64,000 nucleotides of DNA from NCBI RefSeq assembly GCF_026571515.1, contig NW_026860085.1, positions 248,001-312,000 on the forward strand, written 5' to 3'. Source of the DNA: Ruditapes philippinarum (taxonomy: Eukaryota). The notes under the pieces were generated by a model, which was not told the DNA's origin, did no database searches, and was given only the letters and a program-made list of their open reading frames with translations. Below are positions 12,301-15,300 of the stretch, in pieces. The translations under genes and the position numbers were made by a program. The stretch's first letter is position 1, and each line of letters starts with the position of its first letter.

Positions 12301-15300
12301 ATTGGAAATGGTTCCTTTGGAGTTGTTTACCAAGCAAAATTAGTTGAATCACAAGAACTTGTTGCAATCAAAAAGGTTCTGCAAGACAAACGTTTTAAGG
12401 TTAGTTATTCATACTTAAATGCCATGGATTGTACTACATTGTGTTCACTTTAAAGCTTGCTTGAACACAATGTGCTCTGAGGTGAGCTTAAAAGAGGGCT
12501 TGATGTTTGTCATGTGCTGTTCTTCTTCATCCACAATTAACAACAACTCCTTCACCACATGGTAGATATCAAATTTCATAGAAATGATTTAACACTTCTG
12601 GCATTGCATCATGTAATGTTACAATGTAGCATTGCCTGTTTTTTCGACAAAATTTAAAAAGTAAATAATTTCCTTACTCAAAAATGGCCTTGTCCAGGTG
12701 TTAAGACTTGTTGTATAATAATAAACCTCCAGAGTATTGAATCATTTTCAAAATTTTTGTATGTCCTTTAAATTTATATCAGATAGATCATTATAGTTTT
12801 ATGTGTGGACAAAGTCTGTTGCACTGGGTCACTTTTAAGCTCCCTTCTGCTTATTGAAATAATACCATTTTAAACTTTGACCTCCCGTACTGTATGTAAA
12901 AGTGAGAGAAGCTTTCATGATGTGAAGACCACAGAAGCCTGTTTTATGATCAATTACAAAGCAGTGATTTTTCTCACTTAATTGGGAAGAGGCCTGAGCC
13001 TCTTGATTTTGGGAAAAATTATCGCTAAAATTGCTGATTTGGGAAGTAAAAAAGCTGGTTTAAGTTCAGATTTTTGGGAAAACTGCATGATTTTAAAGAA
13101 AATTTCAATTGGGAAGAGGCCTTTTTTCGGAGTCTGTTATATAAGTAGAAAAATCACTGCAAAGGAATTTAGAAGTAGACATCAGCTGAATTTTGATAGA
13201 ATACAAACATTTTTATGAGTGAAAATAATACTTGATTTATGTAACAATCAAAATAGAATAGTTATGACCATCTAGTCTTACATAATACATTTATTGTCAG
13301 TGAGATGAAACAAAAATTACAACAAAAAGATGATTCCATGCAATCATATTATATTATATTGTTATATTTTGTAAGAAATTATTTTGTTTTCATGTTAAAT
13401 GTTTATTGATACACTCATAACTGTAACTGTTGAATTCCCAATTTGAATTGTATCTTTTTGTTTGACTTTGTAAGTATGTCCACTCTGTTAATAAAGAAAT
13501 TTTTTCTCTAATATGATTACAATTATATGTCCACACTGTAATTAAAGAATTTTTTTCTAATATGATTACAGAACCGAGAGTTACAGATAATGCGCAAGTT
13601 GGAACATCATAATATAGTCAAACTCAAGTATTTCTTCTATTCAGCTGGAGAAAAGGTAATATACATCATGTACCTGTATATACATAAAGTTGGTGATCTT
13701 CGACATACATCATGCTTTGTCTGATTTTCTGAGATATTAAAAGCTTCCACAGATCATTATATAAATATATTAGACACTTTGCTGTCTGTTGTGAAATAAT
13801 GAAACAAAAGAAGATTCTGCTTCTGTTATATTCAATTATTATAATAACAACTGAATTAATAGATAATACATTTGGTTTATGACCAGTGTTCAATATGGTT
13901 CACAAAAACTATTATATATTAGCTATTTGTTAATGAAATATAAATTTTATTGAAAGTTTCATGGTCAAAATTTATTTATATACTTATGTGAAAGTATGTA
14001 CTTCAAATCTTTGTAAAAATTGTACGCTGTTGTAATAAGAACTCCATAAAGTTTAAAATTTGGAAATTAAATAATATTTACATTGGTTGGAAAACTGCCA
14101 ATTGTTTTTTCAGAGAGTTTATATATTGTTTATTATGATGTGTTTGCCTCTGTTGTTTATTTGTCATCAGAAAGATGAGGTGTTCCTGAACTTAGTTCTA
14201 GAGTATGTACCAGAGACAGTGTACCGAGTTGCTCGACATTATAGTAAATCCAAACAGACAATACCCATTATCTTCATCAAGGTACTGTACATGATTTCAT
14301 GTGTTTAAAGGGCACTCCAGTAATACTTAACAATATTCATTACAATACTGAGACTGATACTTAGATTTTTGTTTTCTTTTGAAAAAAAAATCATCTGATT
14401 TCTCGCTTCCAATTCCCACAAAAAATGCAAAATCTTGTATATTGTTGTTTTGTTTTAGATAACACAAAACATATGCACATTGATAATTGAAGTCTCAGCA
14501 TTGTATTGAAATCTGGACAGAAATGAACAGTTTGTATGGCAAGCAATGAATAAAGGTTTTAAAAATTTTTTGTAAAATGTTTAGAACTCAACTGAACTTG
14601 AGAAGGCATAACACTTAGGATGTCTTGCTCAGGAAATTGAGATTTCTCTTATCATTGGATATCAAGTTAAGTTGCTTGTCTTGCCAAACTGAACTCATTT
14701 CTGTCAACACAACACTGGAGTTCCCTTACATTAACATAACTGTTCTTTTCAAGTTTATATGTTTGTAACATTTTCAGAAAGATGAGGTTTTCCTGAATCT
14801 AGTTTTGGAATATGTTCCAGAGAATTTGTATAGGGTAGCTCGACATTACAGTAAAAATAAGCAAACAATCCCAATGCTTTTTATTAAGGTATGTATAGCT
14901 TCAAGCCTTCAGTCTGAGGCACCCTAGGCTTTGGTTAAAGCACCGTGACTTAATGCTGAGATACTCCCAAACTTGTCACTTTCACTCTTGTATAGACTTC
15001 GGGGCACAGCAACTTTCAGTGAGAGGTTATCTATATGAAGTTAAGTTGCCGGTGATCCTTGTGTATGAACACTTATCTTTTTTCTCCCCTTTGATGATTC
15101 TCTAGTCATCAGTGACATATTATTGTCTATTTAACTTTCTATTGTGACTAATATTTCAGCAAACAGCTGCTTTTTCTTTCTATTGACTCATACAGAATTT
15201 ATTTTACAATATTAACATTTCTCTGAATCGTGCAAACATTATCTCTCTACTTTAATCTTCTAACAGATTTGTTGTGAAATAAATTTTTATTAGGTATTGT

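Follow-up and report, generated by a model that had tools for sequence, protein, structure and literature searches.

A single gene for glycogen synthase kinase 3 (GSK3) of the clam Ruditapes philippinarum very probably gives rise to two kinases through the mutually exclusive splicing of two tandem copies of its exon 4, here designated 4a and 4b. The gene lies within a 64,000-nt stretch of contig NW_026860085.1 (positions 248,001 to 312,000), the whole of which is referred to as the window; coordinates are those of the window unless another source is named. In the model that we propose, the tandem duplication of exon 4 would be older than the divergence of venerid, mactrid, and dreissenid clams, and every mRNA would now read 3-4a-5 or 3-4b-5, giving two full-length kinases that differ at five residues. 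The exchanged segment comprises the gatekeeper L132, the hinge (133-135), the post-hinge rim (136-141), and alphaD up to the start of alphaE (human GSK3B numbering). GSK3 is heavily studied in Wnt, insulin, and tau signaling and in drug design. The clam pair is notable because the near-invariant rim of the ATP site is affected and because an in-frame pair needs a mechanism of exclusivity other than decay of the transcript.

The exon pair and its use in RNA

The two exons are 111 nt long each, comprise 37 codons in phase 0, and have intact splice sites, on which our reading of the sequence, a script, and an earlier sequence-only reading of the same DNA agreed. Directly before each exon stands cag, the end of a pyrimidine-rich tract; gtactg follows 4a and gtatgt follows 4b. 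The copies share 76% identity at the nucleotide level and 86% at the amino acid level. Their 27 nucleotide differences are distributed 6/2/19 over codon positions 1, 2, and 3, and the codon comparison made by hand in the sequence-only reading (16 synonymous changes, 5 replacements, 0 indels, and 0 stops) was reproduced exactly by script. When 27 random substitutions were simulated on 4a, the mean number of amino acid changes was 16.9, and five or fewer were obtained in 0 of 100,000 trials. The Nei-Gojobori method gave a dN of 0.079 and a saturated dS. The introns flanking 4a and 4b, which had been described as not alignable, showed no alignment beyond chance except for one 17-nt repeat.

Both peptides align with residues 123-159 of human GSK3B over 37 of 37 positions (E values of 3e-16 for 4a and 6e-14 for 4b). 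Since the alignment runs from end to end in both cases, the replacements can be assigned as T138N, V139L, S149N, I155M, and I156L. The five positions had been mapped correctly from the sequence, and only the polarity at 156 had to be corrected: other molluscs carry [I/V/M]-L at residues 155-156, so L156 of 4b is the older state and I156 of 4a the derived one. The derived features of 4b are N138, L139, and N149, and 4a and 4b have thus both diverged from the ancestral exon. The gatekeeper L132 and the adenine-binding hinge residues are the same in both Ruditapes exons, with Glu at 133 in each. E-T-V was found at 137-139 in 351 of the approximately 368 GSK3 exon-4 sequences gathered. The pair T138-V139 is nearly invariant in animal GSK3; it is kept in 4a and is replaced by N138-L139 in 4b.

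Exon use was assessed by comparing four sequencing runs of one organism over positions 13450-15450. The evidence of splicing was provided by the Logan contigs of runs X1 and X14, which belong to two different studies. The contig over exon 3 has the end of exon 2 on one flank and AAAGATGAGGT, the common start of 4a and 4b, on the other, and it stops at the first base that distinguishes 4a (G) from 4b (T). In both runs the last 17 nt of exon 3 run ahead of both 14169 and 14776, and the first 27 nt of exon 5 (20112-20138) trail both 14281 and 14888. Because identical loose ends of exon 3 and exon 5 flank 4a and 4b, each variant is joined to the same constitutive exons. No contig of either run had a 4a-4b junction or a skip from exon 3 to exon 5, and the 4a donor and the 4b acceptor were otherwise crossed only by contigs of low-depth unspliced intron; a contig retaining the 4a-4b intron had a depth of 9 in run X1.

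Contig depth was taken as a rough measure of expression. In run X1 it was about 105 for 4a and 146-215 for 4b (a 4b share of about 60%), and in run X14 it was 12.8 for 4a and 3.4-5.4 for 4b (a share of about 25%). The 4a:4b ratio therefore varies between samples. Because assembly drops rare variants and depth is a rough guide, the splicing pattern was demonstrated at the level of contigs and not to a percentage. Runs X23 and X24 (2026), which are labeled as paired-end RNA-seq, have loose ends that start with GATC at 15057 and 15313 and resemble DNA or proximity-ligation libraries, not mRNA.

The annotation agrees with the contigs. The RefSeq Ruditapes proteins XP_060606497.1 (isoform X1) and XP_060606498.1 (isoform X2), both of 420 aa, differ only at the five residues; exon 4a is identical to isoform X1 and exon 4b to isoform X2. 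A six-frame search of the clam's own 1.4-Gb assembly with exon 4b found 4a and 4b as the only copies of exon 4. Since there are only these two copies, GSK3 is a single locus in this genome, and one gene supplies both isoforms, as had been proposed from the sequence.

Relatives, age, and possible function

A scan of metagenome contigs yielded three informative loci, L001, L005, and L035, and the protein of L005 was used to collect named proteins, which were scored over the exon region. L001 is a 3.3-kb genomic contig from a marine metagenome in which an exon of the 4a type (177-287) is followed by one of the 4b type (703-813), as in the window, both with intact AG/GT splice sites. L005, a 5.6-kb mRNA contig, matches exons 1 to 8 of the window in order, with all introns gone. 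It has a complete 427-aa frame with an exon of the 4b type only, and it is a 4b-only mRNA of a related clam. L035 begins within a 4b-type exon and continues with exons 5 and 6. Isoforms X1 and X2 of Dreissena polymorpha differ solely inside exon 4. Orthologues of 4b were present in the three loci, in Mactra, and in Dreissena. With the RNA contigs of two studies and the 4b-only mRNA, the RefSeq pairs of Ruditapes and Dreissena corroborate the mutually exclusive use that the sequence-only reading had anticipated. The opposite was found of everything that it had named beforehand as fatal to this view: RNA is spliced to 4b, relatives have an intact 4b, and none of the contigs includes both exons.

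Both copies are conserved and under purifying selection. Between the window and L001 the values of dN/dS were 0.012/0.78 for 4a and 0.023/1.33 for 4b (ratios of about 0.015-0.017), and between the 4b exons of the window and L005 they were 0.023/0.46; between species dN/dS was <0.05 for 4a and 4b alike. In a tree of the exon nucleotide sequences, support was 96/98 for a clade of the four 4b exons and 98/98 for a clade of the two 4a exons. The exons thus sort by type instead of by species, which makes the duplication older than these species and shows that the copies have not been homogenized. An old duplication with selection on both copies had been read from the window itself, and the saturated dS between the copies, the low ratios, and the type clades (96-98%) bear it out. 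The residues are equally consistent across Ruditapes, Mactra, Dreissena, and L001: all 4b exons have N138, L139, and N149, and all 4a exons have T138, V139, and S149.

Judging from these comparisons, the switch predates the split between Venerida and Myida, which took place some hundreds of millions of years ago. Among the proteins retrieved from Mytilus, Saccostrea, Pinctada, unionids, Solemya, gastropods, a chiton, an octopus, and a nemertean, only ETV was found, and the isoform pairs of Liolophura, Lineus, Physella, Gigantopelta, decapods, and amphioxus had no difference in exon 4. Protein clusters at 90% merge such isoforms and some annotations are not based on RNA, so the absence beyond heterodont clams is only suggested by these searches. 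The distribution suggests an origin of the switch in heterodont clams.

Several side observations concern the exon in this and other animals. Exon 4b is the best-conserved exon between the window and the L005 mRNA (91% nucleotide identity vs. 82-87% for the other exons). In 4b of Dreissena (P0161) and of L005 (659-769) the hinge residue 134, two residues past the gatekeeper, is Cys instead of Tyr or Phe; in 4a of these or related species, Tyr/Phe134 is retained. The Cys is probably real because two independent sources show it, and it could be chemically addressable. Other animals have exon-4 variants that depart from ETV (P0001, P0135, and P0037 from ENA; P0163 and P0034 from Logan). One is an ETV/EML tandem with copies about 105 nt apart, the second copy of which also has the gatekeeper change L132M together with Y134F. 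The motif ENV occurs in an exon that likewise has L132M/Y134F, ENM in a full-length mRNA of 414 aa, and ENL in an exon that has an arthropod-like tail and is spliced to exon 5. The nearest named relatives of the ENM-type P0163 are 77-82% identical to it. One GSK3 paralogue of horseshoe crabs (Limulus and Tachypleus; P0327 and P0381-P0383) has L132M, Y134F, and T138M (EMV) in all of its isoforms. It was rejected as a splice switch since it is a constitutive paralogue; it is the counterpart of the clam switch at the level of paralogues.

In GSK3B, Thr138 takes part in a water network at the ribose site, and ligands extend toward Arg141 (PMC7248956). Because residue 138 sits in this hydration network, we infer that the two isoforms differ in the handling of ATP, ribose, or inhibitors or in the docking surface of alphaD. 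The best-supported interpretation is that 4b would alter the rim of the ribose pocket and the packing of alphaD and alphaE, tuning the handling of nucleotides or inhibitors or the alphaD surface.

Three other explanations of the pair were weighed. The first is that the isoforms are catalytically equivalent, the duplicates either letting regulators set the GSK3 output by tissue or stage or being a frozen accident. That just five, mostly conservative, changes separate 4a from 4b, with the hinge backbone contacts at 133 and 135 unchanged and L132 identical, speaks for it; the residues at 138, 139, and 149, however, are specific to the type in every 4a and 4b of four lineages despite saturated synonymous sites, and T138-V139 is otherwise near-invariant in animal GSK3. 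Neutral differences would not remain type-specific for that long, and we therefore regard equivalence as improbable.

The second explanation, that 4a and 4b are included together in a kinase with a duplicated hinge, has in its favor that such an mRNA would stay in frame and that a protein model of Mactra antiquata (KAL4229288.1; P0160, 459 aa) carries both exons in tandem. It is contradicted by the RNA, in which no 4a-4b contig was found and the contigs from the 4a donor lead to exon 5 or to unspliced intron, and by the RefSeq models and L005, which hold one exon each. A duplicated segment from gatekeeper to alphaD is, in addition, incompatible with the kinase fold. We give joint inclusion almost no credence, and the 459-aa model is most likely a prediction artefact of an exclusive pair. 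Equally hard to credit is a 4b that is unused, decaying, or mere splicing noise, given that its junction contigs (3-4b and 4b-5) match or exceed the 4a depth in run X1, that a complete 4b-only mRNA (L005) and RefSeq X2 isoforms exist, and that dN/dS is about 0.02 between species. Decay of 4b, an allelic duplication, and an assembly artefact were rejected on the basis of dN/dS, the RNA contigs, and the search of the clam's own genome.

The locus and the intron between the exons

The gene was mapped by tblastn with GSK3 proteins and the RefSeq Ruditapes isoforms, and the boundaries of exons 1-3 and 5 were read from the sequence; the starting GSK3 proteins came from a profile-free search with exon 4a. 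Nine coding exons match the RefSeq GSK3 beta-like isoforms collinearly, and the protein of the last three is 100% identical to the Ruditapes philippinarum RefSeq entry 'glycogen synthase kinase-3 beta-like'. This identity extends to the fast-evolving C-terminus, for which it is just 78% to Mactra and 60-63% to Dreissena and Mya, and it places the window in Ruditapes philippinarum or a very close relative. The precomputed domain PF00069 (protein kinase domain) lies on the GSK3 protein P0162. The features are collected in the table below. Besides these, the intron between 4b and exon 5 contains an inverted repeat with 103-nt arms (19091-19193 / 19226-19328; 95% complementary, 32 nt apart) that looks like a miniature transposable element, and the 64-kb window holds 328 N.

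Table. Features of the GSK3 locus in the window, with the corresponding intron stem of the metagenome contig L001
Feature	Position	Strand	Evidence and remarks
GSK3 exon 1, coding part	9357..9441	+	ATG at 9357, ends before gtaagt; tblastn, translation, collinear with mRNA contig L005
GSK3 exon 2, glycine-rich loop and Lys85 region	12209..12399	+	tblastn; its end precedes exon 3 as a loose end in RNA contigs
GSK3 exon 3 (NRELQIM...YSAGEK), constitutive, upstream of the pair	13572..13655	+	tblastn, sequence, RNA contigs of runs X1 and X14
Exon 4a, ETV-type hinge/alphaD (human GSK3B 123-159; T138, V139, S149, I155, I156)	14171..14281	+	junction contigs; RefSeq isoform X1
4a-4b intron, 496 nt	14282..14777	+	retained at low depth in RNA contigs; strong fold
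Intron-closing stem, 5' arm, 27 nt past the 4a donor	14309..14321	+	minimum-energy and centroid folds; 12 pairs with the 3' arm
Intron-closing stem, 3' arm, 51 nt ahead of the 4b acceptor	14714..14726	+	minimum-energy and centroid folds
Closing stem in L001, 29 nt after the 4a donor and 57 nt before the 4b acceptor	317-340 / 620-645 (L001)		23 pairs, 16-bp perfect core
Exon 4b, ENL-type hinge/alphaD (N138, L139, N149, M155, L156)	14778..14888	+	junction contigs; RefSeq isoform X2; orthologues
GSK3 exon 5 (...CDFG), constitutive, downstream of the pair	20112..20242	+	tblastn; first 27 nt are the loose end behind 14281 and 14888
Remaining GSK3 coding exons (approximate)	20901-21005, 21896-22096, 25780-25965, 26472-26642	+	tblastn, RefSeq Ruditapes isoforms

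Several known ways of keeping two exons apart do not fit this pair. An exon length of 111 nt, a multiple of 3, keeps both double inclusion and double skipping in frame and so leaves nonsense-mediated decay no way to enforce the choice. An incompatibility between U2 and U12 splice sites was ruled out, the four splice sites beside the pair being GT-AG in a U2-like context. The linear intron between 4a and 4b, at 496 nt, is in itself too long for simple steric hindrance; a closing stem, described below, would leave 27+51 nt (window) and 29+57 nt (L001) outside the loop. A docking site with competing selectors was looked for in the introns around 4a and 4b and was not found. The sole intronic element shared there is the 17-nt direct repeat (16/17 identical) at 14659-14675 and 15033-15049, roughly 100 nt ahead of 4b and 145 nt behind it; no credible complement to it was found, and L001 and L035 lack it. 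Being unpaired and not conserved, it led us to reject the docking/selector model.

The 4a-4b intron folds more stably than shuffled sequences, with z scores of -5.65 in the window (0/100 shuffles were as stable) and -3.06 in L001. A stem that closes the intron was found at the equivalent place in the minimum-energy and centroid folds of both. The sequences of the stem differ between the window and L001, and the remaining intron is not alignable. Shuffled arms equaled the observed stem in 74/3000 cases for the window and in 6/3000 for L001. An inner inverted repeat of 20 nt (14336-14355 / 14491-14510; 90% complementary) forms one arm of the multibranch fold of the window intron. According to the predicted fold, the closed loop would leave an effective path of about 40-80 nt from the 4a donor to the branch site and acceptor of 4b, and so short a path would disfavor the joining of 4a to 4b. 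We put this stem forward tentatively as the mechanism of exclusivity, a plausible candidate that falls somewhat short of an even chance.

A broader account starts from the non-ETV variants of other animals, which suggest that the switch may not be confined to clams. Alternative exons for the ATP-site hinge would be ancient, or would have evolved repeatedly, in invertebrates with a single GSK3, giving enzymes that differ in pharmacology and kinetics, and in clams the choice between them would be enforced by the intron-closing stem through structure-induced steric hindrance, unlike in docking/selector systems. As a whole we consider this account doubtful.

Some points weigh against our view that a single gene makes two kinases through an exclusive exon pair. 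Since contigs lose rare variants, double inclusion or double skipping may occur at a low level, and the contig depths of runs X1 and X14 are only a rough guide to expression. The raw reads of runs X23 and X24 number about 30 each (33 and 30), are mostly intronic, and come without junction counts. The five replacements are conservative, and their effect on catalysis could be close to neutral. As for the mechanism, the stem is known from two species, its copy in the window is marginal with respect to chance (p ~0.025), and no docking/selector pairing was found for 4a and 4b.

Significance and comparison with known systems

Full-text literature searches turned up no description of a switch of this kind, whether for GSK3 in general or for that of bivalves. 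The suspicion that the switch was undescribed held for the literature searched but not for the databases: both isoforms already sit, without comment, in the automatic RefSeq annotation of Ruditapes, as they do in that of Dreissena. Annotation pipelines disagree on how to treat the pair, RefSeq giving isoforms X1 and X2 and the Mactra model fusing both exons, and measurements of clam 'GSK3 beta' expression made without regard to the switch may pool two enzymes. The two isoforms offer a test of what positions 138 and 139 and those of alphaD/alphaE contribute to selectivity for nucleotides, inhibitors, and partners. In turn, an in-frame pair with a conserved closing stem would be a compact system for studying exclusivity without nonsense-mediated decay.

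The pair belongs to a known kind, that of mutually exclusive exons duplicated in tandem, as in FYN, MAPK8, and MAPK14. In FYN, the exclusive exons 7A and 7B (FynB and FynT) exchange the linker together with the first, ATP-binding part of the kinase domain, and the isoforms differ in tissue and in properties (PMC9741552). Both FYN and the clam GSK3 are kinases in which two homologous exclusive exons replace part of the N-terminal kinase region, including the ATP-binding site. FYN, however, is a vertebrate tyrosine kinase in which the SH2-kinase linker and the start of the domain are exchanged, not the segment from gatekeeper and hinge to alphaD. The FYN event has also been characterized experimentally, whereas the clam event is described from genomic and RNA sequences.

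MAPK8 and MAPK14 are among the robust cases of substitution by tandem exon duplication (PMC8373072). MAPK8/9/10 (JNK), with exons 6a/6b, and MAPK14 (p38 alpha) resemble the clam gene in being CMGC kinases with tandem exclusive exons of the same length inside the kinase domain. The segments exchanged in these MAPKs are in the C-lobe, affect substrates and docking and not the hinge or the ATP ribose pocket, and are conserved in vertebrates. The MAPK exon pairs are thus found in vertebrates, and the GSK3 event so far in heterodont clams.

With respect to the control of splicing, intronic RNA pairing has been tied to the exclusive choice of exons in Dscam1, 14-3-3 xi, and ATE1 7a/7b (PMC6071210, 10.1101/2020.06.04.134791). 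The clam GSK3 is like these genes in that conserved intronic base-pairing goes together with a mutually exclusive choice. The difference is that in them several selectors compete for a docking site, whereas in the clam gene a single stem closes the intron between the variants.

Within the GSK3 family, alternative splicing is known from the exon 8A/9 insertion of human GSK3B (GSK3beta2) and from the isoforms of Drosophila shaggy. The former is a cassette insertion in the C-lobe and the latter result from alternative promoters or termini; neither is a substitution of homologous exons at the ATP site. The vertebrate paralogues GSK3A and GSK3B are closer to the clam forms, being two GSK3s with near-identical kinase domains. 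Their single difference in the hinge, Asp133 in beta and Glu196 in alpha, has been exploited for paralogue-selective inhibitors, and the variation of the clam GSK3, like that between GSK3A and GSK3B, lies within a few residues of the hinge. The paralogues are the products of two genes and differ in their N- and C-termini, whereas in the clam one gene has 37 residues exchanged by splicing. The clam switch may thus be seen as an invertebrate counterpart to the division of labor between vertebrate GSK3A and GSK3B.

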